A DNA stretch of 64,000 nt from Bugula neritina (lineage: Eukaryota > Animalia > Bryozoa), in assembly GCA_964035545.1 (NCBI GenBank), contig OZ037773.1, positions 959,751 to 1,023,750 on the forward strand, in the 5' to 3' direction. This document shows positions 8,561 through 60,092 of the stretch, piece after piece (the first letter of the stretch is position 1; each line of letters starts with the position of its first letter). A program made the position numbers and the translations under genes. The notes beneath the pieces are model-generated. The model was given only the letters and a program-made list of their open reading frames with translations. It did not search any database and was not told where the DNA came from.

Positions 8561-8798
8561 GTGACACTAGTAAAACTAAATGTATTTTCAATGTGTCTGT
8601 TGGAGCACATCAGTTGTAACTGCAAGAGTGATTATTATTAAATTATTATTGTTAGCTACTTTATCAGCAATACTCTGTTATAATTTAAATAGTAATGCTA
8701 TAGCTCAATCACAATTGTATGTGTTAAATGAGTAAAAATTATTGCAGTATTTTCACGAGGAGATCTAGTCGGGGAGTCCCGCGTTTCTGTTTGAGAGG

Positions 8799-33503: not shown

Positions 33504-36500
33504 AGGAGTCTGGTGGGACACGCCGTCGTCTGTCCGTACAAACACGACGGAACACTCCCCCCGAGTGGCAGGTACCACGCAGGACTAGCAGGCCCGCACA
33601 ACGGCCAAGTACCTTCTCCCTGCCACTCGCCAACCGGTTCCACCGGTTACCTCGGGAGGAGGAGCCCGCCACTGAAATGGAGCCGGAAGGCCCAGTGGAG
33701 AGCCCCAAACCCCGCCGGCACCAACCTCGCCGCCGGAAACCCCGTAAACCACGGGTGAAACCCCCGCCGTCCTACCAATCTAGGACAGCAAACGTGGGGG
33801 GGGGGTGAAAGTACAACCACATGGAGAGAGCTATTTCCTACCCGGAAAGGTGGCCGGCAACGCCGTCACTTTCCTGCTCGACTCCGGTTGTACTACCAAC
33901 CTTCTCAGTCGTAGAGTCTTTGAGGCACTGCCCCGCCCCGCCGGGACAGGGATAGAGTACGACCGTATACGGGGGAACATGGCACCCTGGCAGACGGGTC
34001 ATGTATTCCCTTCTACGGTATTATCGAGCTCCTTGGGCGTGTCCGAGACCAGGCTGTACAGGAGACTTTTATCATAAGCCAACTGGAGGAAGATGCTATC
34101 CTCGGAATGCCTTTCTTGAAGCAATACCAGTGCCGAATAGACTTCAGCAAGTCGGTGGTGCTGATGGGCGGGCGAGAACTCGCCTGGGTGGATAAGTTTG
34201 GGCGTCCTCTGGTGGGCGGTGTTCAGGTAGTTCGAAACTGCACCGTGCCCGGACGCTCCAGAGCTACTATCCACTGCCGAGTGAACAGCAACCGGGTAGC
34301 CAGGCTCGGGGTCGTTGAAGGCGCGCACGAAAGGATCCAACTCGCTAGTAGTTTAAACCAACTAACTGAGCGAGGGGAGGTCTTGGTGCAGTGTGTCAAC
34401 CCCTTTACCGAGCCCATTGAGCTCCCAGCTGGGTCAATGCGGGGCCGGTTCCACTCCGTCCAGGAAGAGAACGTGGGCCTGTCGCTGGGTGACGCGACGG
34501 AGACACCCCCTCGACACCCTACTCAGGGACGAGGGGCAGTCCCAACACATCTCCGGGAGTTATATGAAACAGCCTGTGGCGGCTGCGCGAGCAACATGGA
34601 ACGCCAAGCGATGGCGAAGTTGCTACGCGACTACGGTGATGTGTTCAGCAGCGGAGATCATGACGTGGGGCTGACTGGAGTTGTCAGAGACGAAATACCG
34701 CTGACTGCAGGGACAGTCCCTGTCCGGCAACCCACACGCAGGCTGGGGCCGAAAAAAGAGAAGGAGGTTAGCCGACAAGTACGGGATCTTCTGGACCGCG
34801 GCCTCATAGAGCCCGCCCATAGCGCGTGGAGCTCACCGGTCGTACTGGTCCGGAAGAAAGACGGCAGTTGGAGGTTCTGTGTGGATTACCGCAAACTCAA
34901 TACCGTAACCATACAGGACGCTTACCCTCTACCTCGTATTGACGAGTCATTGGACGCCCGAGCCGGCAGCAAGTACTTCAGTATGTTAGACTTGCTGAGT
35001 GGCTATTGGCAAGTCCCTCTGAGTCCCGACGCCCAAGAGAAAGCGGCGTTTATCACACGGGACGGGTTGTGGAAGTGGAAGGTGCTGCCCTTCGGGTTAA
35101 CCTCCGCCCCAGCCACCTTCCAGAGGCTGATGGAGCAAGTCCTTAGCGGGCTCCATTGGAAGACACTGCTGATCTACCTCGATGATGTCATCGTGATCTT
35201 CCCAGACTTCGAGACGCATGTCAGTCGTCTGCAGGAAGTTTTCGAGAGACTCCGAGGTGCCGGTCTTAAGCTCAAACCTTCCAAGTGCGCTCTATTGCAG
35301 CCGGAGGTCAAGTACCTGGGGCACGTTGTCGGGCAAAACGGCGTGGCAACGGATCCCGAAAAGGTACGGGCGGTAGAAGACTGGGTCACCCCCCAAGACT
35401 TGACCGGACTCCGGGCTTTTTTGGGGCTGGTAGGGTATTACAGGCAATACATACCGGACTTTGCGGGCATAGCACAGCCGTTAAACCGGCTCACCGCAAA
35501 GGGAGTGACGTGGCAGTGGACCCCAGTCGAACAAGGAGCGTTCGACCGCCTCAAGGGCTGCCTGCTAACGGCGCCCATCTTGGCCTACTCAGACCCCACT
35601 CTGGAGTACATCCTCGACACGGATGCCAGTGACCAAAATGTTGGCGCTGTGCTGTCTCAAGTGCAGGAAGGCCGAGAGGTAGTAGTAGCCTACTACAGCA
35701 AGTCTCTCTCACCCGCTGAACGAAATTACTGCACTACCCGCAAGGAGCTGCTGGCAGTAATCAAGTCAGTGAAGCACTTCAGACCATACTTATACGGCAG
35801 GAAGTTCCGGCTGCGTACGGATCATGCCTCGCTGATCTGGTTGTGCAAGAGAGCAGAGCCCTCCAGTCAGGTCGCCGGTGGCTCGAAATCCTAGCTGAAT
35901 TCTCCTACCGGATCGAACATCGACCGGGCAGGAGACACAGCAATGCGGATGGTTTGAGCCGCCGACCTGATGGAGGTTGCAAACAGTGTCTCAACATCGA
36001 GAGGAGGGACGGAGGTCCCCCGCGATGTGAGTTGGAGACGCTGGCTCGCCATGGAGCACTGTTTGACTGGGACCAGGGTCAACCCAGACAGGAGGTTGAC
36101 GAGTCCCCGGAGGTTGTACAAAACCTCCGCGCCAACCCTGTACTGGCCGATAGTGTACGAGAGCTGAAGAAGCTCCAAGAAGAGCTGCCTGGAGTAGTGG
36201 CAGACATATATCGGGCCAAAAAGGAAGGGCGACGACCCAGCGAGGAACGCATAAGACAGGGATGCGCCGAGTTCCGGCTATACTGTCAGCGTTGGGACTC
36301 GCTGCGGATCGGGCAGGATGGTCTACTGACCATTTCTCTAGCTGCCAGCGGCAGACACCCGGAGAGGAAGAGGGTGGTCTGTCCCACTGCCATCCGCCGT
36401 GAGCTGATTTGGGACACTCACAAACAGGCCCACGCAGGGGTCAAGAGAGTGATCTCCAAATTACGGCTCCGGTGGTATTGGCCACAAATGGAGCGTGACG

Positions 36501-38084
36501 TCCGACTCAGAGTCAAACAGTGTGAGATCTGCCAGGCCAGTAAGCATAGCCGTTCCCCTGATGAAGCGGGACGGCAGAGGCTATATGCTGGAAGGCCCTG
36601 GCAAGTAGTCGCTGTAGACCTGGTCGGACCCATGCCCCTGACCCCCAGAGGCAATAGTTGGATCTTAGTACTGACCGACCACTTTACTAGGTGGGCGGAT
36701 GCTCTGGCTATCCCAGATGCGTCAGCCCCAACAGTGGCCAGGGCATTAGACCAACATGTATTCTGTTATTTTGGTCTCCCCGAACAGATACACTCTGATC
36801 AAGGCGCTCAATTCCAGTCTCAACTGATGAGCGACCTTTGCTGCCTCTTGGGAGTAAATCAGAGCCGGACCACACCCTACCACCCTCAAGGTAACGGGGT
36901 GGTAGAGCGCAACAACCGGATGCTAGGTGATGCGCTCCGGAGCCTCCTCCTTGGACGCGGCCAAAAGGAATGGGATACGGTGTTGCCGCAAGTCATGCGT
37001 CCATACCGTAACACCCAACACACCAGTACTGGTGAGACCCCAAACCTCTTGATGCTCGGGAGAGAGACTCGTGTCCCTGACCATCTTACCTACCACGTTC
37101 CAGAGCAAGACAACTCGGTTCACGAGTATGCCAGTGAACTAGTGGAACGGATGAAGGCCGCACACGATATACTGCGCGAACAGCAGTGGAAGGTGCGGCA
37201 CGAAGATTCCGAGGAACCACCTCTCTACCAAACGGGAGATAAGGTGTGGATGGTCAATCACCGTAGGCGTCGCGGGCAGGCTGACAAATTAAAGCCTAAG
37301 TTTGTGGGACCCTACGTGATCGTCGAGGCTATGCCCAACCATACGTACAAGATTGAGCGCTCAGGACAGGTGTCTATCCAGAATGAGTCTCGCTTGAAGC
37401 CGTATTGGGCTAGCCCCGACGCAGTGGGAGAAGCCCCCCCGTTGTTGGAGCCCAGGAGGCAGACAACAACACGCGGGTGACGGCGGCATGGACCTGAATA
37501 CGAAGTGGTCATACCGCGGGAAGAAAACTTGGTGAGAGAGGAGCGACAGCTTCTGTCAACAGAAGCGTGTCCGCCACCGCCAAGTCTAATTCCATCACTT
37601 CCAGAAACCGAGCCGGTTCCGGAAGTGCAAACCCCCACGGAGGGAGGGGCTCCATCCGGAGAACAAGAAGAGGTGACCGCTAACGGTGAAGTAGAGACGC
37701 CATTAGAGGCCCCTACTAATAAACCGGCGAGCGTGTCACCCCCCCTAGAACGGGGACAGCGTACGAGGAAACCCCCACCATATTCTAAAAGACTTCGTAT
37801 GTGACTGCATTGAAAGCGGCACGCATGAAAGTCTAGGGGAAAACCGTACGATAAAATGTTGGAATTGTGAAACCCACGCAAATATCAACTTTTGCGAGGG
37901 CGGAATAGTGGGAGGAATTAATGCGCGTAAAGCAAATAGTTCCGACCTCGTGCCTCAGAAACGATGCTCAGCCTTTTCTTACGCTGACATCGCCAAAGGC
38001 AGACGTATCTCACAACCAGCTCCAATCTTACCAAGAACGTTGAGTATGGACATTAATACCGAGTTCACAGGTAATCCAGTATGA
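33452..38084 (+). pseudogene. pol: G4 pol (PR-RT-RH-IN) with a few frameshifts and stops
   Basis: LLDSG, YLDD, DTDAS, integrase HHCC/DDE and KFVGPY in ORFs 33805-34077, 34107-35894 and 35843-37480. Confidence 0.93.
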
Positions 38085-39175
38085 GTCTTGTATTCCTATC
38101 CATGGAAACGGGCTCGATGCCAGTAAATTCTGAACTAATTCAACAGATTGAATCAGAATTACTGGGAACCACATTTCACGTGAATGACGATGAAGACACT
38201 GTAATGGCCGACGGTCTGTTAGACCTGGAGCTAGACACTGTTCTTGGTCAGTCCACACATGATTCACTGGTTCCTCGAGTGCATTCTAAAAGTTGTGACT
38301 CTCAGGCTAGTAACAGTCGACAGTCACTAGAATTATGTTGTAAAGATCCACCGCGATCTAACAATAATTCTACTTTTGTAGACACACTCGCGCCCGTCTC
38401 TCCGGGCATGCCTTCTCTAGAGATGGCGTGGGATCCAGAGCCGGCCCCACCCACTTCCACAACCAGACAACTACCACCCCAGTTGGAAGCAACCTCTAAC
38501 TGGACTACCCGTGCCACAGAGAGAGAGATTAAGACTCATAGAGGAGATGACAGTAACCGCGAATGCCGCCTATGTCAGCAGCGGTTTACAACCCATCGTA
38601 GGCTGAGAGTCCACTTGCCACAGCATTACATCACAACGTTCTGCCCATGCGGAGAATATAGTTACAATCGTGATTATCTACTGCGTCACCAACGCATTAT
38701 GCAGTGCTTTCAAGGACACGTCTATGAAGTAGACAAATCATCATATCCCGCATTCCTTAACGCCATCAGACCCCTCATCACCGACTCGGCTTGGCTGTCT
38801 CGCCTAGAGCAAGGCTTTCCCTCCCCTCGACCCATCATCTCTGAAACCATGGATAAGCCTACAAAATCAGCTAACTCCCCACCTCTCAGTCCTATACGCC
38901 AACCGCATACACTCCCCCGTGTCGTACTACAGAGGGTAGACACGAAGGCGTATACACTCCCTCCCCCACTTCCATCTTCAGAACGAAAAAGGCACAGACA
39001 GCAGACTTTCTCTCGTTCTTCCCCTCTGGCCCGCAACTTACGTGAAGTAGAAGCTAGGGCACACGACCTGGAGCAAGAAGTGTATAGACTGGCCCCGCGC
39101 GTGCATGCTGCATCCAGTGAACTCAAGTATCTACAGGAGTCTATTAAACGCATGAAGCGGGCGGCCAACGATTAA
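38046..39175 (+). CDS. G4 spliced accessory gene: exon 38046-38070 + exon 38382-39175; ~272-aa C2H2 zinc-finger/coiled-coil protein
   Basis: MDINTEFT-G|gtaatc...ctaac..ttttgtag|AC in frame; CRLC-x12-HLPQH, CPC-x12-H-x5-C, basic ERKRHR, C-terminal heptad repeat. Confidence 0.75.
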
Positions 39176-42100
39176 CATGAGTCCATCTCCAACTCCATAC
39201 TACTCTTCCCCTACCTCTCTGTGGCATTCCCTCCCGTTACGGTGGCACGTACTCTACATGTAAATAGGACTTTCTTTTACATACTTGCATCATTCATTGT
39301 GCATATTTTTTTATATATACCTGTATCTCTAATCAGTTGGCTCTTGTATATTATACTTTTGTACTGTTCTCTATCTGCCCACCGATGTATACGTTTTTTT
39401 TATGTGAATTATATTTTTTTATCAGAAAAAGGGCTTTCTGCTGGAGGGGGCAGTGTGGTGGCTCGTAGAGCTACCAGCAACACAATACGCAAGGTTGCGT
39501 ATTGACCCGGAACGATGTATTAGCCAATTAGCTAAGCTGCTTATGAATAATAGTAGCAGCTTCGAGCTACTAGCCCAGTTGAGGATAGTGCTGTAAATTA
39601 AATAGACGTGTGTATTATTAACTGTTGTATATTAGATTTTATTATGTATTCTTGTATTCAAATATAACGATATCTACTCGACTTATCACGGTGAAGTTTT
39701 TCTAGTAATAAATAGACTCTCTTGGTTGCACATCGACCCTAATTCTGAAAATCATAACAATATGTATATAAATCTAGTGTCAATTACAGACAAAAATAAT
39801 CCAGCATTCATCAACAGTCATTATAATACCTATAAAATAACATGACTCTTTGTATGAGAAGAACAAGATGTAGTGTTGTCTTTAGTAAAATCAAATCTTT
39901 ATTGTGAGTAGAATGGGTAGTCTGTATCAGGTGAGCTCCAGTGGCAGACTGAATCTACACTGAGAGCTCATCTGCTTTTATACACAAAAATTCACACTCC
40001 GGAAAAGGGATGGGCAAATGTTTTTGAAGTGGGGCCGGTGACCGGGCAATTGTGGGTGGGCCGGCCAGGTCTTTTTTGTTGGCTGCCTGGTAGTCCGGGA
40101 TCATTGCCTCACCATGCCAAAGCTATCTGTATAGGCCGGGCAATAGTTGGTTCGATTGGGGTCGAGGTAGCGCTAGCTCTGATCAGCTGGGTAGATGGCA
40201 GGGTCGTAGCTTCATCTTTCGTCTCCTGAGTTAGGTCCAAGCAGTTCATTGATATGGGGTATTGCCGCATACTTCGGTCAACACGACCCGAAAAAGCTGG
40301 GTGACTGTTGGCCATGTGACTGTGCCGGTCTGAGGGTTGTGCTTCTGGAGTCGTCAGGACCATTCCGGATCCGAGGCTCAAAGTTTTTACCTGTATTGGG
40401 TGTACCACTCCTCTGTGGGGACATCTCCAGGTGTCCCTCGTGGTAGTCGGCCAAATATATAGGTGGCCTCCTACTCCTCTGGATTCTTTCAAAGGTGGCT
40501 GATCCTGTACCCTTGGTGGCTCCATAGGTGTTGTGGGTGGGGGCCCCCACTGCCACCCGCGTCAGGGGTGGGAATGTCCTCCACTGGTGAGGGTGCTGGT
40601 TTTGGGGCCCACTGCAATGGATGGTCTGGTCGCGGGGGTGGCTCCAGCTCAGAGTCAGGTTCTGGCCTCTTACGAAGATCACCACATTTCGGGTTGGGTC
40701 ACTTTCCCTCAAACGTTGAGTTGACGAAGCTTGTTTTACTGCGTCTAGACTATCCTGGTGTGGTATCAGGGGCTGCTCACTCTGAACTGATACTTGCCCT
40801 AGCATTCCAAACAATACATGTGGTTGGGTAGCCCCTCCACCACACAGTAGGAACCCAATATTTTGGGCTAAAGCTTAGCCGGTTGTCCACATAGCCTACA
40901 ATAGGTCACCATCCAAACCCAGTCCTCTGCCTGGTATAGGGGGAGCTACTCGAAGTGTTCCGTCCGCATCTGCCATTGCTTCTTCCGCAAAGCAGCATGG
41001 GCCTTGCCCTTGATCTTTACCAGCTTCTCCATGTACTAATATACTGAGGACTCGGGAGCTGGAACACGGTATTTCAGGTGATCCGGAACCCGTGTTTGCC
41101 GGCAAAGCATCATCAAGTTTGAGGTCCCCTCCGTGCTGGATTGTGGTGTGCTACGGTAAGCTCGCATGATCTGAGGCAGCACCACGTCCCCAGGAGGTAA
41201 GTTGCAAGGGGCAGACAGGATGATCCCACGATCGGAGAGCCCGCCTGTCGGCCTGGTCGCTTTGCAACTCGGTCACCGTAGCCTGCAGGCCCTTCACCAT
41301 GTTCATCAACATGGTGAGCTGCGATGGCTCCGGCGATTTAGTAGTCCGTGACACTAGTAAAACTGAATGTATTTTCAATGTGTCTGTTGGAGCACATTAG
41401 TTGTAACTGCAAGAGTGATTATTATTAAATTATTATTATTAGCTACTTTATCAGCAATACTCTGTTATAATTTAAATAATAATGCTATAGCTCAATCACA
41501 ATTGTATGTGTTAATTGAGTAAAAATAATTGCAGTATTTTCACGAGGAGTCCTGCGTTTCTGTTTGAGAGGCTAAAGGCCAAGCTGAGAACATGGCTCGG
41601 TAACACTTTCTCGTCCCTTTAATCCAGCAATAAAGCTTACTGCCTTGTGCTCTAACATTTCCAGAAACTCAGTGTCTTTAGCTAATGCTGGATCCCATAC
41701 GATATCTACGTACTCAAAAATAGGACGGATTAGTGTAGGCCAGTAGCTTACCTTCTCTGGGGGCATCATGTAGAACATATTTAATTGCTCCCAGAATTTT
41801 TGAGGCCTTTTCCTTTTCAAATGTAATATGATTGCTGTAGTGGTAATTTAATAATTACATTCAGTGGCTAGCTTTGGCCGGCATACGATATTGGCTGTCT
41901 GCATAATATGGAATATTATTGTTATCTGTATAAACTTCAGACTGCCATTGTCCTACCAGCAGACAGTCCATATCAATAAGGTGAATAGATGAATAGACAC
42001 ATTGCCGTTTAGTATTGCAACAGCTTGACTTTACTCCTTATGATTTGGATTACATAATCCTCAATGACTAAGATCATAAATACTTTCAATTCATAACACT

Positions 42101-44383
42101 GCTGTCTAGAAACCAGAGTTTGACGACCTGCAGTAATATAGTTATATTGGTGAGTGTGGTGTATGTGTGGCTTGAATGAAAATGAAAAGTATAAACGGGA
42201 GTGTGTATGAGAGAACGAGAGGAAAGAGAGAGGAGAGATAGAGTGAATGAAGAGATTGAAGATTGTGCAGAATGCATTAAGCTATATGAGCGAGTGCTAG
42301 CCCACTTGAGACTTGACAATACCCCTACAAACAAATACCTCTACAGACTGATGGGAGCTGGAGTCACCTCGCAGCCAAGCCAAGCGACCTGTGCCTGTAT
42401 GCTGGACTCGAGCTCACCTGAAGGCTACAACCCAATTATATTATTCGGTGAGATGCAATAGCTGAAAACTCCATATCCCGATATAACATGATGATCCGAT
42501 TTAAAGTTTGACTGCATTAAAATTCCCAAGTATGTTGTTGAGTCTCCCTAATTTATCTTTACTTTACTTAGCTTGTACAGGGGTTTGTAATTTCGATAGG
42601 AATACGAAATTGAATATGAATAACTATACCTAACTATAACTATAACTATAAGTCAATAACTATTAGCACTACTACTGGAATTGTGATTGTATTTATAATA
42701 ATTATCACCATCACAATCAATATTATTACCACAATGAACATCTTAATCAAAAATATAACATCATTACTACAGTTTTAGTTTATTATTATCTCAGTTGGGG
42801 TAGCACTTCCGCAGCAACTGAAATGCCTATAGAGAGGGAAGCCTCTTGTGACAACTTATATTAATATTACACCAGAGTTAGCACTTGTAGTTGTACTTGT
42901 TACATTTACAGCAATTGCTGTTTGATCAGTAATCATAATGAGTAATTGCAATCAGTTATTCATATATCATATATGATATAATGATTCATTACTATTCAAA
43001 TGTTGATCATAATATTAATCATAATGACAATCATATGGATAATAAATATAAACTTCAATATGATAATGATTGAAATTTAAATGTGAAATTCAAAAAGAAA
43101 AGGAAAATCAAATAATATCATTATTAAATTTAAATCAAAATGTCGTTTGTCCTTGAAATTGAATTTGACGAAAAATATTTAAACTCATATTCAAATTTAA
43201 AGTAGTAATAAATTTGTATACGTTTACGTATTTTATGACAGCTTCCACGCACTACTATACTAGTGCAACACACCAATCGACAACTAAACATAGTCACTAA
43301 CTGTAAAGTGAGCACTTAACATAATTAATTAAAGTAGTAAAAATAGCATAGTGTAATGAATACCTAATAGTTGGTCGAGAATTCAGTGTTGCGTTTAGTA
43401 TAACGTTTCATTTAAATAAGTTATCGCATCGCTTGATTCCCGCCTACGCAACGACTGCTAGTTGTATTAATTAGATAGCAGCACGCCCTCGCCCATTGGC
43501 TGTGGTTTTACGCTTTGGTAGCCCGGATGTTCGTTGCAGACTGAACCTACAGCTAGTAGAATAGTAGCGCTCTAGCAATGCAAGTTTCATCGCATCAATA
43601 ACAATCAAATTTAACATGATATAATTATTAAAATGTAAATCAATTTGAATTGTGCATCAACAGCACACGCGAATCTGCTTCTTCTAGCTCACTGTCACAC
43701 GGTGCAACTGCTGTAACCAATCACATTACTCTCAGACTGTGTCAGAGCCAGTCTTATTGCACTTACCATTACATCAACAAACAAATTTCTGGATACAAAT
43801 ACATAATAGAGCATCAACCAATTAAATTAAGAGCTACAACTAGAAAGAGCTGAAAAGTTGACCTTAAAAATATCAGCACCACTGTCAGATCAGAGAATAT
43901 ACAATATTTTATATTTTTGCAGAGTAGATACTGCACAGTAACTTGATGTATTTGCACCTTACAGAATGATATGCTAATAGTAATGGTGATTATGATTGGA
44001 ACTAATGGTTTTAATATATATATGTATAGCTTGAAAGTTTGTAGTAAAGTAGTGGAGAAGAAATTCAAACTTCATCATGGCCTTGCAAAATAATTCACTA
44101 GGTCATACTCCATCATGGCCTTGTAAAAATATTTACCAGGTAGATACAACTGGTTTTTTCTAGCTAGAAAATGATTATTTTATTGATGAAAATAGAAGTG
44201 TCAAAACAGTTACATCCTCATGAAGACAGACATCAAGATTGAAACTATTTGCTAATGTAAACAATAAAAATGCCAAATAGTCTCATTACTATGAAGCTTG
44301 CAAAGATTGTGGGAAATATTTTACAATGAAGTTAGAAGTAGAATTTCTATAAAAATATGTCATGAGTGATTAAACTAAAGTAT

Positions 44384-45266: not shown

Positions 45267-46724
45267 CACCTGTACTTCACAAGTTATGTTTCTGAGATTT
45301 TCTGCCAGCTCACTAAAATATGGTTTCGGCGATGCTGAGGTTTGCCTGAGACTTCCAGTAAGATAGTAGCTGCAGCAGGTTGATGCAATTATAAATTATT
45401 ATATCTGCTCCCTCACCGTATGTAGACTACAGTTTATCTATAACATTCAAGAGAGAATATAAAGTACATTCAAAAAGTAATAGGATGCATGAGGCCCAAT
45501 AATTAAGTAAAGATAAAGTTTAAATGTACAAGTTTGAAGTAAGTTAGATATTTTGGTCTGGCATAGAAATTGCTCTAAACGAAGAATGCAATAATATATG
45601 TATACATATATATATGTATATGACACATGATTTTATAACTTCTTTGGACAATGCAAATAGGATTACTTAGTAGTGTGGCTTTTAAATAAGTAATTGCGAT
45701 GTTGATAGTACTACATGCCATGATCACGTGTCTAAAAATTTGTAATATTGACTTTTGAAATAAAACGCTAATTGATGAAGAAATGGGAATGAATAAAGAA
45801 GCCGAAAGATAGAACAGATTTTGTTCATTAATGGAGATATACATATGTATATGTGTGAATATTTCTTCCTGTAAACATATAGATGATATATACAATATTT
45901 TAAATGCTTAATAAATTATTTAACCTTAATATAGCCCGTTACAAAGATCAACACGTGAGCATAGGCTGATATATTTTATCATATTATAGTTTAAAAAAAT
46001 TATTCTGTAGATCATAGACTGAAGTACAATTATTGATGATATAACTTACAAAATACAAAAATGAGCCAACAACAACAGACCCTTCTTACGTCAATCCCTA
46101 TCTTGGCTGTAAGCTGACAACATACCTATGTTAATGTTTTCCAGAATTAGGGTTGATATGCAATCCAGAGAGTCTAATTACTTGCTATAGAACTGCACCA
46201 GGATAAGTCGAGTGAACGAGTATATATTTTAAACACAATAATACATTACAAAAACGATACAAATACATTTGACAATTCTACACATCTAGGCTATTCAGCA
46301 CTCTAACTTCGACTAACTAACAGCAGGAAAACTAATACTGCTGCTAACTATCAAAACCGCTAATTGGCTATCACTTGTTCCGGGTCAATTACACGACCCT
46401 GTATACTGTGCTGCTGGTAGCCCCACGAGCCACCACACCGCCCCCACCAGCAGAAAGCCCTCTTTCTGATATAAAAAATATTTCTTCATTACCCACATAC
46501 ATCAGTAGACAAAATTGGAAAAAGACAATATCTAAGATATACAATAACAGACAGAGTCATTATAACAGCAGGCTACATACAATTGGCCAGCTATAGAGGA
46601 GAAATACCGGCTAGCTGTGGTATTGGGCAAAGGGTCGACCTGTCGAGCAGTCAAGCATTTACATGATAGTCTTGGGTCTCCCAAGAGGACGAAGTTGTGG
46701 ATTATTCCGGCAGCAGAACCAGAG

Positions 46725-47767
46725 TCAGTGTTGGGCACGCCGATGTTTGGCTTGGCACGTACGTAGCTTCCGTTTAATCCGGCCCACCGATCCTTTTAGT
46801 TGGAAGAGCCTCGTCGTGGTATTAAGCAAGTCCGGTGCTAACTGGGTAAATTCCTCTTGCAGGCGGAGGAGGCGTTCCTCCACTGTGGCCAGGCGAGCAG
46901 GGTCTGGGGACGGTGTCCGTCTGCGGCGCAGAGGGGGACTGGGAGACCTGGTTCGTCTCTTCGTCGGGGTAGGGGAGACCTCTCCTTCTTCAGGATAGGA
47001 AAACTCTTCGGGGGTGTACGCAATCTGAGGGCGGTCAGATACCAATGGAGATTGTTGCCTGGCATAGTTTAGTACACGCTGGAAACCTGAGGTCAGGACG
47101 GCTGACAACATCGCCTTCTTTACCAGGGGTCGTATCAGAGTGAGGAATTCTGGATAGAGCTTGGCATCCACCACGTAATTCTCTCCGGAGAAACAGCCCG
47201 TCGCTCGATGTCTGGTGACGGGGTAGGGGTAGACATCATTGTATCCACAGGGGCAGAATGTGAGTAAGAGATGGGCGTTGACATGTAGCTTCAAGGAGCG
47301 GTGAGAGGCACATTCTTCGTCACAAATCTGGCACCGCGTCCGTCCTCTGGACCCCCAGGCCGTTTCTATCTGCTCCTCTGTTTCTAGTGGCTCGGGCCGG
47401 TCACCATTGGCATACTCCTCAGGATGCGGAGCAGGAAGTGCTCTATCCCGTACCCTGGTTGTAACGGGTCGAGTGTAATCTGAAAAAGTTTCAACAGTGT
47501 TAGTATAGTACACTGTCGTGTTGTCAGCTTGAACAGTCTGGCAACTACTCTCTCAGTTACCTCGTAGAGATTTATGGTAGTGAATAGTCAGATAGAACAC
47601 GTATTGCAATGAGATTATAAAATCTCTAAGTCAACTGAGTTCTTACTACGGTAGTTCACTAACCTATCTCCAGCTCGTTTGACTCAGTGAGTCGGAGCTG
47701 AGCGATGCAATCTAGTTTCATATTAAGATATAGTTAACTCACCCCACGATCTGTTGTCGTAAGACAT
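46725..47767 (-). CDS. G5 spliced accessory gene: exon 47743-47767 + exon 46725-47479; ~259-aa zinc-finger/Arg-rich/coiled-coil protein
   Basis: MSYDNRSW-G|GTGAGT ... TACTAAC branch point (47499-47505) ... TTTTTCAG|AT in frame; CQIC-x12-HVNAH, CPC, KRRTRSPSPPLRRRRTPSP, heptad C-terminus. Confidence 0.82.
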
Positions 47768-47791
47768 ACTGAATTTGTGAAATGGTTTGAA

Positions 47792-50700
47792 CTAATGCTT
47801 AGAAACACATCTACTCTTGACTGCATCAGCGTATGAAAAGATCGAGCAACGTGGTTGGGGTGCGTGATTAAGACTTTGTGCACCCGGCGGATGAATTTTG
47901 TTTCTATTTCCGCCGATACAAAAGTTGATATTTCCGTGGTGTTGACAACTCCCACATTTGCTCGATACTTTTCTCGTACGGTTTTCCCCTAGACTTTCAT
48001 ACGCGCCGCTTTTAACGCAGTCGCATATGAAGTCCTTCAAGTATGCGGGGGGTTGCCTCGTTCGCTGTCCCCTTTCTAGGGGGGGTGACACGCTCGCCGG
48101 TTCGTTAGCAGGGGCCTCTAATGGCGTCTCTACTTCACCGTTGGCGGTCACCTCTTCTTGTTCTCCGGATGGAGCCCCTCCCTCCGTGGGGTTTGCACTT
48201 CCGGAACCGGCTCGGTTTATGGAAGTGATGGAAATAGACTTGGTGGCGGCGGACACGCTTCTGTTGGCAAAAGCTGTCGCTCTTCTCTCACCAAGTTTTC
48301 CTCCCGCGGTATGACCACTTCATATTCAGGTCCATGCCGCCGTCGCCCGCGTGTTGTTGTCTGCCTCCTGGGCTCCAACAACGGGGGGGCTTCTCCCACT
48401 GCGTCGGGGCTAGCCCAATACTGCTTCAAGCGAGACTCATTCTGGATAGACACCTGTCCTGAGCGCTCAATCTTGTACGTATGATTGGGCATAGCCTCGA
48501 CGATCACGTAGGGTCCTACGAACTTAGGCTTCAGTTTATCAGCCTGTCCGCGACGCCTACGGTAATTGACCATCCACACCTTATCCCCTGTTTGGTAGAG
48601 GGGTGGTTCCTCGGAATCTTCGTGTTGCACCTTCCACTGCTGTTCGCGCAGTATATCGTGTGCGGCCTTCATCCGTTCAACTAGCTCACTGGCATACTCG
48701 TGAATCGAGTTGTCTAGCTCTGGCACGTGGTAGGTGAGATGGTCAGGTGCCCGGGTCTCTTTCCCGAGCATCAAGAGGTTTGGGGTCTCACCAGTACTGG
48801 TGTGTGGGGTGCTACGGTATGCACACATGACCTGCGGCAACACCGTGTCCCATTCCTCTTGACTGCGTCCAAGGAGGAGACTCCGGAGCGCATCACCTAT
48901 CATCCGGTTGTTGCGCTTCACCACCCCATTACCTTGTGGGTGATAGGGGGTGGTCCTGCTCTGATTTACTCCCCAGAGGCGGCAAAGGTCGCTCATCAGT
49001 TGAGACTGGAATTGAGCGCCTTGATCAGAGTGTATCTGTTCGGGGAGACCGAAATAACAGAGTACATGTTGGTCCAGTACCCTGGCCACTGTTGAGGCTG
49101 ACGCGTCTGGGATGGCCAGAGTATCCGCCCACCTAGTGAAGTGGTCGGTTAATACTAAGATCCAACTATTGCCTCTGGGGGTCAGGGGCATGGGTCCGAC
49201 CAGGTCAACCGCTACCACTTGCCACGGCCTGCCAGCATATAGCCTTCGCCATCCTGCTTCACCAGGGAGACGGCCATGTTTGCTGGCCTGGCAGATTTCG
49301 CACTGCTTTACTCTGAGCCGGACATCCCGCCCCATTTTGGGCCAATACCACCGGAGTTGCAATTTGGAGATCACTCTCTTGACCCCTGCGTGGGCCTGTT
49401 TGCGAGTGTCCCAGATTAACTCACGGCGTATGGCACTGGGGCAGACCACCCTTTTCCTCTCCGGGTGTCTAGAGAGATGGTCAATAGACCATCCTGCCCG
49501 ATCCTCAGCGAGTCCCAACGCTGGCAGAGTAGCCGGAACTCGGCGCATCCCTGCCATATGCGTTCCTCGCTGGGTCGTCGCCCATCCTTTTTGGCCCGAT
49601 ATATGTCTGCCACTACCCCAGGCGACTCCTCTTGGAGCTTCTGCAGCTCCTGGACATTATCGGCCAGTACAGGATTGGCGCATAGGTTCTGTACAACCTC
49701 TGGGGACTCGTCAACCTCCTGCCTGAGTTGACCCTGGTCCCAGTCAAACGGTGCTCCGTGGTGAGCCAATGTCTCCAACTCGCATCGCGGGGGACCTCCG
49801 TCCCTCCTCTCGATGTTGAGACACTGTTTGCAACCTCCATCAGGTCGGCGGCTCAAACCATCCGCATTGCTGTGTCTCTTGCCCGGTCGATGTTCGATCC
49901 GGTACGAGAATTCAGCTAGGATTTCGAGCCACCGGGCGACCTGACTAGAGGGATCTGCTCTCTTGCACAACCAGATCAGCGAGGCATGATCCGTACGCAG
50001 CCGGATCTTCCTGCCATATAAGTATGCTCTGAAGTGCTTCACTGACTTGATTACTGCCAGCAGCTCCTTGCGGGTAGTGCAGTAATTTTGTTCAGTAGGC
50101 GAGAGAGACTTGCTGTAGTAGGCTACTACTACCTCTCGGCCTTCCTGCACCTGAGACAGCACAGCGCCAACATTTTGGTCACTGGCGTCAGTGTCGAGGA
50201 TGTACTCCAGAGTGGGGTTTGGGTAGGCCAAGATGGGCGCCGTAAGTAGGCGGCCCTTGAGGCGGTCGAACGCTCCTTGTTCGACTGGGGTCCACTGCCA
50301 CGTCACTCCCTTTGCGGTGAGCCGGTTTAACGGCTGTGCTATGCCCGCAAAGTCTGGTATGTATTGCCTGTAATACCCTACCAGCCCCAAGAAAGCCCGG
50401 AGTCCGGTCAAGTCTTGAGGAGTGACCCAGTCTTCTATCGCCCGTACCTTTTCGGGATCCGTTGCCACACCCTTTCGACCGACAACGTGCCCCAGGTACT
50501 TGACCTCCGGCTGCAATAGAGCGCACTTGGAAGGTTTGAGTTTAAGACCGGCACCTCGGAGTCTTTCGAAGACCTCCTGCAGACGACTGACATGCGTCTC
50601 GAAGTCTGGAGAGATCACGATGACATCATCGAGGTAGATCAGCAGTGTCTTCCAATGGAGCCCACTGAGGACTTGCTCCATCAGCCTCTGGAAGGTGGCT

Positions 50701-52349
50701 GGGGCGGAGGTTAACCCGAAAGGCAACACCTTCCACTTCCACAAACCGTCCCGTGTGATAAACGCCGCTTTCTCCTGGGCGTCGGGACTCAGAGGAACTT
50801 GCCAGTAGCCACTCAGCTAGTCTAACGTACTGAAGTACTTGCTGCCGGCTAGGGCATCCAATGACTCGTCAATACGAGGTAGAGGGTAGGCGTCTTGTAT
50901 GGTTATGCTATTGAGCTTGCGGTAATCTACACAGAACCTCCAACTGCCGTCTTTCTTCCGGACCAGTACGACCGGCGAGCTCCACGCACTATGGGCGGGC
51001 TCTATCAGTCCCCGGTTCAGAAGATCCCGTACTTGTCGGCTAACCTCCTTTTCTTTTTCCTGCCCCAGCCTACGTGTGGCTTGCCGGACAGGGACTGTCC
51101 CTGCAGTCAGCGGTATTTCGTGTCTGACAACTCCAGTCAGCCCCACGTCATGATCTCCGCTGCTGAACACATCACCGTAGTTGCGTAGTAACTTCGCCAT
51201 AGCCTGGCGTTCTTTGTTACTCGCGCAGCCGCTACAGGCTGTGTCATACAACTCCCGGAGATGTGCTGGGACTGTCCCTCGCCCTTGAGTAGGGCACCGA
51301 GGGAATGCCTCCGTCGCATCACCCAGCAACGGGCCCACGTCTTCCTCCCGAACAGAGTGAAAACGGCCCAGCATAGACCCAGCCGGAAGCTTGACAGACT
51401 CGGTAAAGGGGTTGACGCACTGCACTAAGTTCTCCCCTTGCTCAGTCAGCTGATTCAGACTGCTGGCAAGTTGGATCTTTTCGTGCGCGCCTTCAACTAC
51501 CCCGAGTCCAGAGATCTGGCTATTGTTCACCCTGCAGTGAATGGTAGCCCGGGAGCGGCCTGGTATGGTACGGTTGCGTACCACCTGCACACCTCCCACT
51601 AAATGGCGGCCGAACTTGTCGACGCAGGCGAGTTCTCGCCCGGACATCACCATCGCAGATTTACTAAAATCTATGTGACATCCGTGCCGTTTTAGGAATG
51701 GCATCCCGAGGATGGCGTCCTTCTTGAGCTGACTGACGATGAACTTCTCTTGGATCGTTTTATCACGGACTCGTCCCGTCAGCTCAATTATACCATAGAA
51801 GGGAAGGCACGACCCGTCAGCTAGGGTGCCATACTCCCCCTCATATGGTTCCATCTCGCCTCTGACCCTAGCACTGAGGGTGTCGAAGAGTTGGCGGCTT
51901 AAGAGGTTCGTGGTACAGCCCGAATCAATGAGGAAAGTAACAGCTTTGCCTTCCAGTTTACCGGGCAAGAAATAGCTGTTCCCATGGGGCTGCACCTGAA
52001 CTCTCTCTTCAGGCCTTACTCTTGCAGGGAGTACCTCCCTCGCTTTGGGTCGCGAAGGAGGTCTCTTGGGATGGTGGTAAGTGGGCCTCGGAGGTGCTGA
52101 GGCTAGATTTCCGGCTACCTTTGTTGGCTCCCATCCAGATTCTTGGGCTGGTAGCCCTTCGAATCGATTGTGGAGGGGCATGGAAAAGGTAGCGGCGGGG
52201 CGGAGCCCCTTGCTGGTCCGTCGTGGCTGTTGCCACTGTTGGTTGCCAGTACGCGGTGCCCGTCTGGGTGACCTGCGTTTCTTCTTCCCTGGAGGTTTCA
52301 TCGTCGGCCCGCAGGAGGTGGGAACATCTGCGGGCCGCGGTAGTTTAAC
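47792..52349 (-). pseudogene. pol: G5 pol (PR-RT-RH-IN), one stop at ~50818 and frameshifts
   Basis: ORFs 50817-52409, 49416-50744, 48217-49557 and 47792-48256 carry all canonical motifs. Confidence 0.93.
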
Positions 52350-53251
52350 CCCGGAGTTAGGAAGGGACAGTACTTGCGAAAATGTCCTTGATTCCCGCAT
52401 ACCCAGCAAAAACTGACCGTTTCTCCCGGTGGCGGCGCCAGTGGCCGTACGGGCTCAGCGGCGGTGCCTACAGGGGTTTGTGGCGTCAGTGTTGCTATCA
52501 GTTTGGCCAGCATGTCTGTCAGTTGAGTGAGTTTCGATGCTGTCGCTAACTGAGCCACGGCAGCCGCGGCGGAGGTTTCCTCCTCTCGTCCCGCTGCCGT
52601 GTCCGCGCGGTCTACCTCCACTTGACGGGAGCTCCCGCGACTTTTATGCATTTGATTTGCTAGGAGGTAAGCTTCCCCCTCTGTCAGAGCGTCTTCAACG
52701 GTGGTGACTCCCCTAGCTAGAAACTGGTGGTGGAGACCCAGATCGTCGACAGATGCTATGAAAGCCTCGAGGGTATACCTCTCGTGGTTGACTGGGGGCA
52801 AGTCGCTGTATGCGATCTGTGCCAGCTTCATGACCGCCGCGGCATGTTCCCGCAGCGGGGTGCGTGGATCACGCCGCAACCTTTGCAATCGGGCCCGGGC
52901 ATCTGTAGCAGAGAGCCCGAAGCGGGCCCGCAGAGAAGCAAAGATATTATCAATGTCTACGCCCAGCCCATAAGGCTTGGCTTTGTCCATCAATGCCATT
53001 CTAAGCTTCAGCAGGGCCACCCTAGGGGGCCACTGGGCGACGTCCATTACGTCGCTAAACTCTTGGATGAACTGCTCCACCCCCTCTTCGCCCGTGAAGG
53101 TGGGCGCCTTTAACCGGTAGCGGTCTTCAGTTAGTTCTCGCGGAACCCTTCGCTCTTCTACTACATGGTTAACAGGCATTGTCTCTACAGCATTGTCTCT
53201 ACGCTCACCTTCTGCTGCCAGTGGTTGCGTTCCAGCATTTTCAGTCTCCAT
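52298..53251 (-). CDS. gag: G5 Gag (317 aa) with CCHC zinc knuckle
   Basis: CWVCGNQGHFRKYC; directly follows the PBS. Confidence 0.92.
   Translation of the reverse strand: METENAGTQPLAAEGERRDNAVETMPVNHVVEERRVPRELTEDRYRLKAPTFTGEEGVEQFIQEFSDVMDVAQWPPRVALLKLRMALMDKAKPYGLGVDIDNIFASLRARFGLSATDARARLQRLRRDPRTPLREHAAAVMKLAQIAYSDLPPVNHERYTLEAFIASVDDLGLHHQFLARGVTTVEDALTEGEAYLLANQMHKSRGSSRQVEVDRADTAAGREEETSAAAAVAQLATASKLTQLTDMLAKLIATLTPQTPVGTAAEPVRPLAPPPGETVSFCWVCGNQGHFRKYCPFLTPGLNYRGPQMFPPPAGRR
52305..52349 (-). promoter_or_regulatory. Putative -1 ribosomal frameshift signal at the gag/pol overlap
   Basis: G_TTA_AAC, 5-nt spacer, 10-bp GC stem; pol is in the -1 frame; conserved in G1, G2 and G4. Confidence 0.75.
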
Positions 53252-54332
53252 CTTGGATGCACTATCCCACTGCTGCCACCACTGTTATGTTTTCCAGAAT
53301 TAGGGTTGATATGCAATCCAGAGAGTCTAATTACTTGCTATAGAACTGCACCAGGATAAGTCGAGTGAACGAGTATATATTTTAAACACAATAATACATT
53401 ACAAAAACGATACAAATACATTTGACAATTCTAAACATCTAGGCTATTCAGCACTCTAACTTCGACTAACTAACAGCGGGAAAACTAATACTGCTGCTAA
53501 CTATCAAAACCGCTAATTGGCTATCACTTGTTCCGGGTCAATTACGCGACCCTGTATACTGTGCTGCTGGTAGCTCCACGAGCCACCACACCTAACCGAA
53601 TTCCGCTACAATTTCTGCTGCCAGTTTTCGTTAGCCAGTTTTCACCAGTTATTGCCGGTATCCTTAAATTTTGAACCACCGCCAAGAAGATCCAGCATGA
53701 AAGGAGACGCCAAATCTTTGAAAATCTTTGTTGATATTATGAAGAAGATAAAAGCAAATGAAGATAATGAAGACAGTTGCAGCACAGAAAATACAGCAGT
53801 AGTAGCAGCAGTAACAATAATATTAATGTTAGAAGGAATATCTAGAAAATTGACTAGTTGACACACATATCAGTAATATAGACTGGTTGCAGTGAGTAAC
53901 TTTACAATTTTATGTTAAGGAAATATTGACCTCTTTTTATTATTATTCTATTTGAACTAATAATGATGATGATGAACTCTTTATTTGATAGATCAATAGT
54001 ACAAGAAAAAATAAAATACTTCTATTTGCAGGCAAAGATGGAAGTTAATATTTTCGAATGTATAAAAATACAATCTGCAGTATATTTGCTTTCTGTATAA
54101 CAGTTTTTTTAAATATTATAAGGTACATATAATATTATTAAATACAGTATGATACTTGAAAATAGAAATTGTATACGAGTATTATATTGAGTACATGAGA
54201 GTTATAGCCTGGCCTTGATGGTCATCTGCTCTGGGTAATTAGAACAACAGTCTTCTAGTGAAGTTCAAGAAGGAAATGATTGATTTCCAGTTATCCATGG
54301 AGGGGTTAGTATGAGCTCTGGTGACATCATAG

Positions 54333-54752: not shown

Positions 54753-57700
54753 TGTTGTAATTTGCACAATTACTATGCGTGAGTTTTTGCTTGCGTATTC
54801 AGTATGCTTTCTAACTAGTAATTACAAGGGTAGTAGCCAAATAATAATCTTTATTATCCACAATAAACACAGTATAAAACATTACATCAAATTACAGTAA
54901 TACAATAGCCATCTAACTATGTGCGTACGCTTCGAGTTCTCGCTCACAACAACGTGATAAGCTAAGAGCTAACAGTGTTAAGGATTATACACTGAAGTAC
55001 CGCCGGCATGTACAGCCTGACAGGTGCTATGTTCAGTTAAACACTCGCGAGATTCAGGCTAATGAATAGTTGATCGAGAACACACTCGCTATGACAGATT
55101 ATTAGAATCTAAGTGGACGTGTGTTCCCACCACTGTGTTTCATTATCGAATCTTCAGCTTGCTAACTGGTATAGTTAGACACAGGATAGTTAAGGGCATC
55201 CTCACTAAGAATATCATAAATTTCTCTCAAAATGTAGTTTAGGTTCTTGAATAATACTACTCTGCGGGTGGCATGTGTGTTGCCTACTTGCAATTGTTTA
55301 GCCTAAGATCAAACTACAACCAATAAGCAGCAACCTTCATTAGGGCTGCATTATCTATCAACATTCCATTATAGGCGCTACGAAAACAAAGTACCAAGCA
55401 AGCTATTCATTATAGCCTGCCAGCTAGCAAGCCTTTAATTAGCATGTACGCGCCAATATCTTCTCATCCCTACGTGCTCATTGAAGCGTGAAGCACTGCC
55501 CGCTGCTAATTGAGTCGGTTTACTTCATTTAGTACACACCAGCAACTTATGACCTAACATTAAAGTTTGCTCAAAATCAATTGAAATTTACTATACATGG
55601 CATTTTTATGTGCTGGGAGGGGATTCCCCAACATTAAAGCACAGGTCATTGTCATATGCACTTAATATTCTATATGTGCGACCGTTACGAAAAAACCGTA
55701 ACGGTCTGTAACCAAAACTAGCTGAATAATTAGGGAAAAACATGGGAAATGAAGCAAAATTAAAAAGAACTTTGATTATTTAGGTGTATTTATTGGTGTT
55801 TTACTAGTTTTGGCCAAAAAACCATGTTCATTACCAGCTAAATTGTGAAAAATAGCCAAAAACTGAAGATATCCAGTGTGTACTAAATTAAGTAAAATGA
55901 CCCAATTTACTATGAAAAAACATAGCATTTTCAGTGTATAAATCACCAATTTGTGGGCAATCTAGAAGAGTTATTGGAAAAAGAAAAAAATTACCCTGGA
56001 GAAATATCTCAGGATTCCAGCAGTGCAATTTCTAATTAGATATCATGCTTTGCTGCTGAGATATTTTACTGGTACTGAAAAGTCAGTTTTTCAGGCAAAA
56101 TTGGCCAAAATTAGGCAGTTTTTTGTCTATAACTTTGCAAAAAAAATTAAAATTGAAATTTCCAAAAAGTTACCCTGGAGGAAAAGAAGATCTACAGCAT
56201 AGTTTTTAAATTTTGACTCTAGCACAATTAGGTGAGATTTTATTTTACTGGTACTGAATTCTTATATGATTACAATGCAAACCTCAGCAAGGCAGTTGCA
56301 GCTAAAAGGTTGCCTTTAACTATCCTGTGGAGCTTACTGATGTAGTCTAGTTCCCGTACCAAAAACAACTAACTCACCCTTCGATCCAGAATATTAAAAC
56401 ATTTTGAATGAGAGTGGTACTGATTATTGTTTTGTGGCATGCTACTCTTGACTGCATCAAAGTAGGAAAAGACCGGGCAGCGTGGTTGTGAAGCGTGACT
56501 AGGACTTTTTGCTTCCGGCGAATGAATCTCATTTGTGATTCCGACAAGGCATAAGTTGATATTTTCGTGGTGTTCAAAACTCCCACGTTTCTTTGCCTGT
56601 CTTCCCATACGATACCTAGCTAGACTTTCATAACTGCCGCTTGTAGCGCGGTCATATACAAAGTCTCCGAGGTACGCTGGGGATTGCTTAGTGAGCGGTC
56701 CTGGAGATATCGTCACTGTGAGAGGCGGTGTGCTCACCCGTGGATTGTTATGTCTCACGGGTGGTGTTTCCAGCCTGTTTGTGACGGTTTTTCCTACGTT
56801 GGTGTCTCTGTACGGAGCCCCTCCCACGGGGGTTATTGCACTTCCGGACTCGTTTCTGGTTCCGAAAGTGGTGGTGGCAGGCCTGACGTTGGGGCGATGG
56901 GCGCGTTTCCAAAGACGGAAGTGGCTTTTCCTGCCTCGCCAAGTTTTCCTGGAGAGTCATGGGCGCGCTTCTGGCCAGGTCGACAGTCTTCGCTTGCCAA
57001 GACCTTCTAGCACAATGCGTCTGCCGCCCCGTTTCACCAGGGAGACGGCTATGCTTGTCGGTCTGGCAGATTTTGCACTGTCTCACTCTGCGCCGTATGT
57101 CCGGCTCCATGTTGGGCCGGTACCACCGGAGTTGTAACTTGGTGACCACTCCCTGGACTCCCGCCTGAGTCTGCTGGTGGATGTCCCGTATCAACTCCCG
57201 GCAGATGGCAGCGGGGCAGACTATCCTCTCCCTTTCTGGCTGTCTGTTGTTGGCGGCCAAAGTCATGGTCAGCAGGCCATCTGGCCCGATCCGCAGGGAG
57301 TTCCAATGTTGACAGTACAGCCGTAACTCGGCGCATCCTTGTCCCCGATGTCTACCACTGGGTCGTCGCCCATCCTGTTTTGCTCGGTACACGTCAGCTA
57401 CCACCCCGGAGAAGCGAAGATCCCGTCAATGTCAGGTCCCGCTCCGTAGGGCTTAGCCTTGTTCGTCAGCGCCATCCTGAGTTTGAGCATGCCACCCTTG
57501 GTGGCCACCGTGCAACTTCCATCACATCTTGAAATTCTTGGATAAATTGCTCTATGGCTTCTTCGCCCGTAAAGGTGTGCGCCTTCAGCCGGTATCTGTC
57601 CTCACTGGGTTCTCTGGGAACTCTCACTTCTTCCAACACTACTGGTTTCACAGGTATAACAACATTGTCTTCCTCACCTTCATTTTAGTGGAATGGGTAG

Positions 57701-58107: not shown

Positions 58108-58559
58108 CCATGCTAATAAGTTTATTGGTTTTCTTTTAAAGCAGCACAAATTTATATGAAGAAAATTGTTTGAAATGATTTATTGATTTTGAAGCAGCAC
58201 AAATCTATTTGAAAAAAATATTTGAATTGAGAAATTTACTTCAAAGCTGCACAAATTTACATTGGAGAAAATATTTGAATTGAGAAATCTATTTCAAAGC
58301 TGCACAAGTTTATGTTGAAGGAAATGTTTTAAATGTTGATGTTAAACTGTAATTCTCTTGTGAGTTTAATCTAGATAGTTTGTCTATCTTGTTTGTCAGA
58401 CTATTTAATTTATGTTCGCTAGTATAATGTAAACAGAGCAAGATTTCAAAAGATCGCTAGGATAATCTTTATTTTGGTTTGGGTAATTTCTTGTAATATT
58501 TCATTAGTGTAATTTTGGTTGTTTCAATACTATCATCAAATAGATATACATATTATACA

Positions 58560-59160
<601 letters not shown>

Positions 59161-59981: not shown

Positions 59982-60092
<111 letters not shown>

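Follow-up and report, generated by a model that had tools for sequence, protein, structure and literature searches.

A conserved, unnamed two-zinc-finger/coiled-coil gene in the env position of bryozoan Ty3/Gypsy retrotransposons

Background

Third genes other than env are common among the long terminal repeat (LTR) retrotransposons but, to our knowledge, are almost never understood, with CERV representing the sole animal case for which a role has been shown. Here we describe such a gene, open reading frame 3 (ORF3), carried by three Ty3/Gypsy elements (G4, G5 and G7) in a 64,000-nucleotide (nt) stretch of the Bugula neritina contig OZ037773.1 (assembly GCA_964035545.1; forward-strand positions 959,751 to 1,023,750), which is referred to below as the window and within which all positions are numbered.

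Compared by its published description, the closest functional precedent for the bryozoan ORF3 appears to be CERV, which is encoded by the Gypsy/Ty3 element Cer1 of Caenorhabditis elegans. This nuclear protein is translated from a spliced message, its C-terminal half corresponding to the ORF in the env position, and is required for the export of genomic RNA (PMC10309623). CERV incorporates a zipper-like helix, motifs resembling nuclear localisation signals (NLS) and nuclear export signals (NES), and a Cys-rich region, while no relatives have been reported outside the nematodes (PMC10309623). The bryozoan ORF3 is likewise a lineage-restricted and fast evolving non-env gene at the env position of a Gypsy element, with a spliced message predicted from conserved splice signals, and its features include a leucine-zipper-like helix, a Cys-rich region, a basic NLS-like stretch and, in the G4 type, an NES-like motif. 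The two differ, however, in that CERV comprises 517 amino acids encoded in five exons, the first of which are in the frame of gag, whereas the bryozoan ORF3 has two exons and starts after pol, and in that the Cys-rich region of CERV has been described as a possible C4 finger, while that of ORF3 forms a C2H2 pair. Furthermore, the function of CERV has been established experimentally, whereas that of the bryozoan ORF3 is predicted from its sequence.

Varied ORF3s (esterase, exonuclease, coiled-coil and transmembrane), typically expressed from spliced messages, are also found in the Gypsy-like LTR elements of bdelloid rotifers (PMC5408684). The bryozoan gene resembles these in being a non-env third ORF in an invertebrate Gypsy-like element (PMC5408684), but the word 'zinc' is absent from the main text of that paper, so that no zinc-finger type is described there, and the named relatives of the bryozoan family are all bryozoan. 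The initial annotation of the window had considered the gene to be undescribed. This holds for the protein family, which is unnamed and found in neither Pfam nor the PDB, but not for the kind of gene, as a spliced non-env regulator at the env position of a Gypsy element (Cer1 CERV; PMC10309623) and diverse non-env ORF3s (PMC5408684) are known.

Results and discussion

The host elements and the location of ORF3

The elements G4, G5 and G7 are Ty3/Gypsy (Metaviridae-type) LTR retrotransposons. Pfam analysis of G4 and G5 identified protease, reverse transcriptase, RNase H, integrase zinc-binding and core, and Tf2-type SH3 domains, in that order, which agrees with the Gypsy-type assignment in the initial annotation. 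The LTRs of G4 and G5 (~306-309 bp) have TG..CA ends and are flanked by 4 bp target duplications, and the elements also contain a TGG.. primer site, together with a tract rich in G, as expected of a polypurine tract, while G7 is truncated by the end of the window. The chromodomain that defines the chromoviruses was not detected by Pfam in any of the pol pieces or in the C-terminal piece of 154 amino acids.

Downstream of pol, the three elements share a layout consisting of an ATG mini-ORF of 7-8 codons with a G/GTRAG-type end (the slash marking the proposed splice junction), an interval of 263-311 nt, a YAG acceptor and an exon of ~250 codons. No more than about 25-45 nt separate the start of ORF3 from the end of pol. 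The mini-exon, interval and exon of each element have the coordinates and sequences given in the initial annotation, and are listed here together with the two complete elements:

32298-39759, plus strand: G4, complete Ty3/Gypsy element, with LTRs at 32298-32603 and 39454-39759 (99% identical) and target-site duplication ATAT
38046-38070, plus strand: G4 mini-ORF or mini-exon, with ATG at 38046, encoding MDINTEFT plus one G, then G/GTAATC
38071-38381, plus strand: G4 interval of 311 nt, with splice-like ends, CTAAC, tag/AC at 38381/38382 and its own ATGs at 38081 and 38102
38382-39175, plus strand: G4 exon 2 (common part of ORF3), with two-finger domain at ~38459-38821, ligands at 38564-38707 and C-terminal helix at ~39023-39169
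46129-53590, minus strand: G5, complete Ty3/Gypsy element, with LTRs at 46129-46437 and 53283-53590 (98.4% identical) and target-site duplication TAGG
47743-47767, minus strand: G5 mini-exon, with ATG at 47767, encoding MSYDNRSW plus one G (ATG, seven codons and one base), then G/GTGAGT
47480-47742, minus strand: G5 interval of 263 nt, with TACTAAC 24 nt before the pyrimidine tract and cag/AT acceptor at 47480/47479
46725-47479, minus strand: G5 exon 2, 250 codons and stop, with fingers at ~47193-47333 and C-terminal helix at ~46731-46901
62683-62704, plus strand: G7 mini-exon, with ATG at 62683, encoding MACQESR plus one G, then G/GTGAGT
62705-62968, plus strand: G7 interval of 264 nt, homologous to the G5 interval, with cag/AT at 62968/62969
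62969-63711, plus strand: G7 exon 2, 52% protein identity to G5, with one in-frame stop and no frameshift

A profile search in all six frames recovered only these three copies of ORF3 in the window. The gag-pol region is interrupted in both complete elements, with seven open segments needed to tile it in G4 (five frame changes and one in-frame stop) and six in G5 (five frame changes), where one tiling junction in each may represent the natural gag/pol shift. Despite this, ORF3 is intact in both. The interruptions in these young copies (32637-38045 and 47768-53251) are nearly all frame changes, five in each, with one stop in the former and none in the latter, a predominance which fits assembly indel errors or trans-mobilised copies better than slow decay.

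A conserved and unnamed zinc-finger/coiled-coil family

The accessory gene of these bryozoan Gypsy elements encodes a conserved, unnamed two-zinc-finger/coiled-coil protein family and occupies the env position. The proteins are characterised by the motif C-x2-C-x12-H-x3-H, followed by C-x-C-x12-H-x4-6-C/H, a basic linker rich in Ser and Pro, and a long helix at the C-terminus, and all the parts named in the initial annotation, namely the C2H2 finger, the CxC-x12-H motif, a Pro-rich basic linker and the C-terminal helix, are thereby present. At each of seven zinc ligand positions (C, C, H, H, C, C and H), at least 90% of the sequences in a 101-sequence alignment retain the ligand, the fourth ligand of the second site is either C or H, and the linker contains 5-9 K/R per 30 residues in 15/17 sequences.

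AlphaFold modelling with the 101-sequence alignment predicted a compact domain at residues ~120-240 of the G4 product (predicted local distance difference test, pLDDT, 93-98), with the model obtained from 20 sequences only (pLDDT 53.7) too poor for use. Within this domain of ~120 residues, two hairpin-helix fingers are packed against four further helices. The linker is predicted to be disordered and the C-terminal helix to extend over ~49 residues (pLDDT 87-96), while the N-terminal extension of the G4 product was modelled as a short helix only. Comparison of the profile against the PDB yielded matches to single C2H2 fingers only (best E-value 1.5e-6). The first site can be classed as a C2H2 zinc finger on the basis of its conserved ligands, the PDB profile match and the two short strands and helix in the model, and it shares the exact C-x2-C-x12-H-x3-H spacing and the predicted hairpin and helix of the Pfam C2H2 families (PF00096/PF13894). 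The bryozoan proteins nevertheless depart from those families, in that the proteins in the window fall below the Pfam cut-offs, the Cys pair of the second site is spaced by one residue and its fourth ligand is C or H, and the two fingers are packed together in a larger domain without structural match. Pfam analysis gave sub-threshold C2H2 matches only for the three exon-2 products and no informative partner domain for ten longer relatives. Foldseek searches against the PDB and the viral models in BFVD returned nothing below an E-value of 0.4, and the weak top matches were to DNA-binding finger arrays. The structure and profile comparisons advocated in the initial annotation have thus provided a confident two-finger domain and C2H2 matches in the PDB, but no match for the fold as a whole, and the family is without a Pfam model and without a fold match in the PDB or among viral models.

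The possibility that ORF3 represents an env gene was rejected, as no Pfam env match, viral-library fold match (E<0.4) or membrane segment was found for the ORF3 product, for which the maximum 19-residue hydropathy values were 1.27 and 0.61. The initial annotation was therefore correct in excluding env. Unlike the env of the insect errantiviruses (Gypsy ORF3), the bryozoan protein has no signal peptide, membrane segment, or env family or fold match.

Using the exon 2 of G5 and the ORF of G4 as separate queries, 71 and 56 relatives were identified, respectively, none of which carried a name or Pfam domain; the close relatives all derive from two Joint Genome Institute samples. A profile search among 1.84 billion sequences detected 236 cluster representatives at E<=1e-3, and among the 30 clusters that were looked up, the only organism names obtained were those of bryozoans. 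A pattern search of metagenome contigs gave 282 matches, none of which was confirmed. The named relatives are two uncharacterized proteins of Watersipora subatra (XP_067940964.1 and XP_067944745.1) and two hypothetical proteins of Bugula neritina (KAF6040922.1 and KAF6040923.1) which are encoded at adjacent loci. Family members are thus annotated as host genes, including P0132/P0263 in Watersipora and P0269 and P0274 in Bugula neritina (the neighbouring loci EB796_000763/000764), with two copies of the module present in P0132/P0263 and in P0274. These members could be domesticated genes or unmasked copies of the element.

Exon 2 of ORF3 is under purifying selection. The ratios of non-synonymous to synonymous substitution (dN/dS; Nei-Gojobori method, intact copies) are 0.12-0.15 for close G4-type pairs and 0.16-0.20 for the G5 type, with third codon positions near saturation between more distant copies. 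A ratio near 1 had been named in the initial annotation as an outcome that would speak against a functional gene, and the observed values (0.12-0.20) lie far from it. They also argue against ORF3 being a captured host exon which is now functionless and decaying. While the annotation of relatives as host genes in Bugula and Watersipora and the stop in the G7 copy could be taken to favour such an origin, each zinc ligand is at least 90% kept over hundreds of diverged copies, and ORF3 remains intact in G4 and G5 where gag-pol does not. Already disfavoured, this explanation is considered highly improbable.

Gene structure in the G5/G7 lineage

Splicing of the mini-exon onto exon 2 is supported by sequence comparison for the G5/G7 type. 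Among five aligned copies (G5, G7, L004, L001 and L003), three (G5, G7 and L004) retain the mini-ORF of 7-8 codons intact, with its ATG and a phase-1 G/GTGAGT, the remaining two being degenerate, one in the mini-ORF and the other in the donor, while the pyrimidine tract and YAG acceptor occur in all five. The interval of 263-279 nt contains 2-10 stops per frame in all five copies (4-10 in G5 itself), and conservation of the coding sequence starts exactly at the acceptor. No Met is encoded upstream of the fingers in G5 and its nearest relatives, and in G5 the ATG would thus have to be provided by the mini-exon. An A is present at position -3 of every mini-ORF ATG, and the length of the mini-ORF varies only once, through a 3-nt indel (G7 versus the others) which leaves the phase unchanged. 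The TACTAAC of G5 does not serve as a lineage marker here, given that the host is most likely an animal. A fungal host, to which TACTAAC and the alternating GC content had seemed to point, was dismissed when the named relatives turned out to be from bryozoans, and the window is most probably bryozoan. The same arrangement of mini-ORF, interval and exon recurs in independent relatives, including L004 of the G5 type and L007, L008 and L010 of the G4 type, and can therefore be regarded as beyond chance.

The initial annotation proposed that the position and phase of the intron were conserved while its sequence had merely diverged. The latter does not apply to the G5 lineage. In all six pairs, the p-distance of the interval (0.20-0.43) matches the value at codon positions 1-2 of the neighbouring exon and amounts to 0.47-0.68 of the value at position 3. 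A non-coding interval that is as conserved as the non-synonymous sites of its neighbour indicates a cis-acting element. The claim of a conserved intron itself has comparative support for the G5/G7 type, where the signals are kept, stops are found in every frame and no other ATG is available before the fingers in G5. It does not extend to G4, where the interval has an ATG of its own and is conserved as coding sequence. The split structure is thus well supported by comparison in the G5/G7 lineage and more complicated than previously described in the G4 lineage.

Two further observations concern this region. A fourth, fragmentary match to the G5-type interval is located at 54970-56377 on the minus strand, where it forms two blocks split by one insertion, with no finger exon detectable alongside. 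In addition, a block at the 3' end of pol (37965-38000 in G4 and 47805-47840 in G5; also in L001, L003, L004, L007, L008 and L010), encoding the peptide F-S-Y-A-D.., is conserved between the lineages beyond the end of the pol similarity and contains a branch-site-like CTGAY followed by AG. This block could reflect coding conservation only, or could represent the acceptor for a subgenomic message.

The coding interval of the G4 lineage

The interval of G4 is open in the frame of exon 2 for ~100 codons from its own ATG (chance ~0.008), and is open and conserved in 13/17 aligned relatives, with ~50% identity. The N-terminal extension that it encodes is acidic (17 D/E versus 5 K/R) and contains an M-A-D-x-L-L-D-L motif that is invariant in all thirteen (13/13). 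The dN/dS of the interval is 0.32-0.5 for most pairs and 0.83 for one. Its synonymous divergence (dS) is 2-6 times lower than that of exon 2 in close pairs, a depression which indicates that constraint also acts at the nucleotide level. Four G4-type DNA copies (G4, L007, L008 and L010) have kept the 8-codon mini-ORF ending in G/GTAAG (GTAATC in G4), as well as CTAAC, the pyrimidine tract and TAG/A, these latter three comprising the same nucleotides that encode an oddly invariant 'RSNNNS'. When left unspliced, the G4-type mini-ORF stops four codons past the donor (twelve codons in total). Since the G4 interval is a conserved ORF, it can at most be an alternatively retained intron, and the simplest reading of the sequence is that such an intron would give rise to a long and a short isoform.

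These observations can also be accommodated without splicing, with the mini-ORF as an upstream ORF, the interval as an internal promoter or ribosome entry element, and translation starting at the own ATG of the G4 type or, in G5/G7-type elements, at a Met further downstream. The conserved ATG and open frame of the G4 type, the early termination of the unspliced mini-ORF and the constraint on the interval would all be expected under this scheme, an in-frame Met precedes the fingers in many of the G7-like relatives, and no spliced product occurs among the 276 proteins compared. It is nevertheless difficult to reconcile with the lack of a Met before the fingers in G5 and its closest relatives, with the start of G5-type coding conservation exactly at the acceptor, and with the retention of consensus donors, branch sites, pyrimidine tracts, acceptors and phase in both lineages. 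We regard expression without splicing as improbable.

Modular history of G4 and G5

Over 4.1 kb of pol (33811-37905 and 47908-51995), G4 and G5 are 88.7% identical, compared with 68-75% for their LTRs and gag and ~30% at the protein level for ORF3. The two elements have a recombinant, modular history, with the break located directly upstream of the mini-exon. ORF3 and the flanking cis sequences have thus diverged jointly, pol having been either exchanged or kept. The joint divergence of ORF3, interval, gag and LTR would fit a protein that is matched to the cis sequences of its own element.

A proposed role of ORF3 on the RNA of its own element

As inferred from the sequence, the best guess for the ORF3 product is a nuclear, nucleic-acid-binding regulator, and the nuclear regulatory protein suggested in the initial annotation is a plausible reading. 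More specifically, we propose that it is a nuclear, dimerising nucleic-acid binder which acts on the RNA of its own element and is expressed from a spliced gene with an intronic response sequence, a reading to which we assign a probability of roughly 40%. In the G5/G7 type, the mini-exon of 7-8 codons would be joined to the finger exon by the removal of an intron of 263-279 nt, while the G4 type would produce a long isoform, in which the interval is retained and supplies the acidic N-terminal extension with its hydrophobic motif, and a short isoform consisting of the mini-exon and finger exon. The protein would bind a constrained and structured sequence within its own intron, which would be present in the unspliced genomic RNA only, and binding may promote the export or use of this RNA, as is the case for CERV of Cer1 or retroviral Rev and its response element. 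Like Rev, the bryozoan ORF3 product is a small accessory protein in which an Arg-rich stretch is combined with a part predicted to oligomerise, and it would be encoded by a spliced message, with a constrained and putatively structured RNA in the intron removed. It differs in having no sequence or fold similarity to Rev, in that zinc fingers replace the Arg-rich helix and in that the support for RNA structure is weak.

A structured RNA is suggested by covariation. RNAalifold predicted 75 pairs for the G5-type interval, with 90.8% of cells paired compared to 31-44% when partners were slid, and fifteen pairs changed on both sides compared to three to seven in slid controls, while twelve of the pairs proposed for the G4 type show compensatory changes against zero to one in slid controls.

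Several points weigh against this proposal. The covariation analysis draws on four to five related sequences, which also served to derive the structures. Other windows in the elements (8/25 and 5/24) fold as stably as the interval, with folding z-scores against dinucleotide shuffles across the whole of G4 and G5 averaging -1.9 and -2.3 and reaching minima of -4.8 and -6.1 within pol; following this control across the whole element, the folding z-score was rejected as evidence for an RNA element. No match to Rfam was found in the window. An nhmmer profile of the G5-type interval did not detect the G4-type interval, homology of the two was consequently dropped, and as they have no nucleotide similarity a cis element shared by both types would be hypothetical. 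The NES-like motif is restricted to the G4-type extension, where its fourth hydrophobic position is kept in 8/13 sequences, and a spliced N-terminus was observed in none of the 276 proteins compared. Finally, pairs of C2H2 fingers are more often DNA binders, as are the fingers to which the weak fold matches were obtained, and the module has been found in one predicted protein with an integrase in two related lineages, which would point to an integrase-linked role instead. The proposal can be extended to a self-contained circuit, in which the finger/coiled-coil protein recognises a structured RNA in its own intron, the same RNA in one lineage codes for an additional N-terminal domain, and splicing sets both the isoform and the survival of the response element, but this more elaborate version is doubtful.

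An alternative is that ORF3 is a transcription regulator which binds DNA in its own LTR, of the foamy-virus type or resembling the papillomavirus pair. In papillomaviruses, a full-length regulator is accompanied by a short spliced form that originates from a mini-exon. By analogy, the long isoform of G4 would carry an acidic activation domain, while the short isoform and the G5-type protein would consist of the binding and dimerising parts only. The tandem C2H2-like fingers, whose fold and profile matches are all weak and confined to DNA-binding fingers, the acidic N-terminal extension (17 D/E against 5 K/R) with its invariant acidic-hydrophobic motif, and a C-terminal helix suited to dimerisation are all in keeping with this function, as is the joint divergence of LTR and ORF3 where pol has been exchanged. 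However, in the predicted structure both fingers are held within one compact helical domain rather than forming a flexible array, the constraint on the non-coding interval of the G5 type is left unexplained, and any binding site is hypothetical. An LTR regulator is thus a possible but somewhat unlikely explanation.

A further alternative is suggested by the presence of the integrase and the finger module in the same predicted ENA protein in two related lineages, P0273 (1460 amino acids) and P0277 (1168 amino acids), with the integrase of P0273 52% identical and its module 34% identical to those of G4. ORF3 might be an integrase partner, a C-terminal module of Pol which has become detached and would tether pre-integration complexes at selected sites on the chromosomes, in the manner of the chromovirus chromodomains. 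G4 and G5 have no chromodomain, and their ORF3 begins ~25-45 nt from the end of pol, both of which would suit this role. Against this, only two fusions were found, both in putative gene models, and the target sites of G4 and G5 (ATAT and TAGG) have no motif in common. The mini-ORF does not keep a constant frame with respect to pol (offsets 0, 1, 1, 1, 0, 2, 0 and 0), so that splicing makes no Pol fusion here, and a splice-made Pol-ORF3 fusion was rejected on these grounds. A function as an integrase partner is considered unlikely, and action on the RNA of its own element remains our preferred reading of ORF3.

Other features of the window

G4 is inserted in an AT-rich repeat (33-42% GC) that occurs in two copies in the window, with aligned blocks (3395-10686, 28739-31841 and 39760-43445) which are 88-99% identical. 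One of the copies is split by G4, while the sister copy retains the empty site near 6950-6956, by which the ATAT of G4 can be read as a clean 4 bp duplication. An element fragment at 2-3394 on the minus strand, cut by the start of the window, matches the initial 3.4 kb of G4 with 90% identity, and more distant pol fragments are found at 13235-17519 and 25307-27221. Upstream of G7, a stretch with 27% GC contains two short arrays of tandem units (58474-58716 and 59895-60131; 8-12 nt spacing) which are ~1.3 kb apart.

Implications

The family described here offers a second example, apparently unrelated to CERV, of a non-env third gene that is open to comparative study. The material available for this purpose comprises hundreds of diverged copies and two lineages with different gene structures, where the constrained interval is non-coding in the one and coding in the other. 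The family would bear on how the unspliced RNA of intron-containing retroelements exits the nucleus, and on the origin of the regulatory genes of such elements. With this family, the protein catalogue also gains an unnamed zinc-finger domain, and an annotation marker becomes available for bryozoan genomes, where some of its copies are now labelled as host genes.

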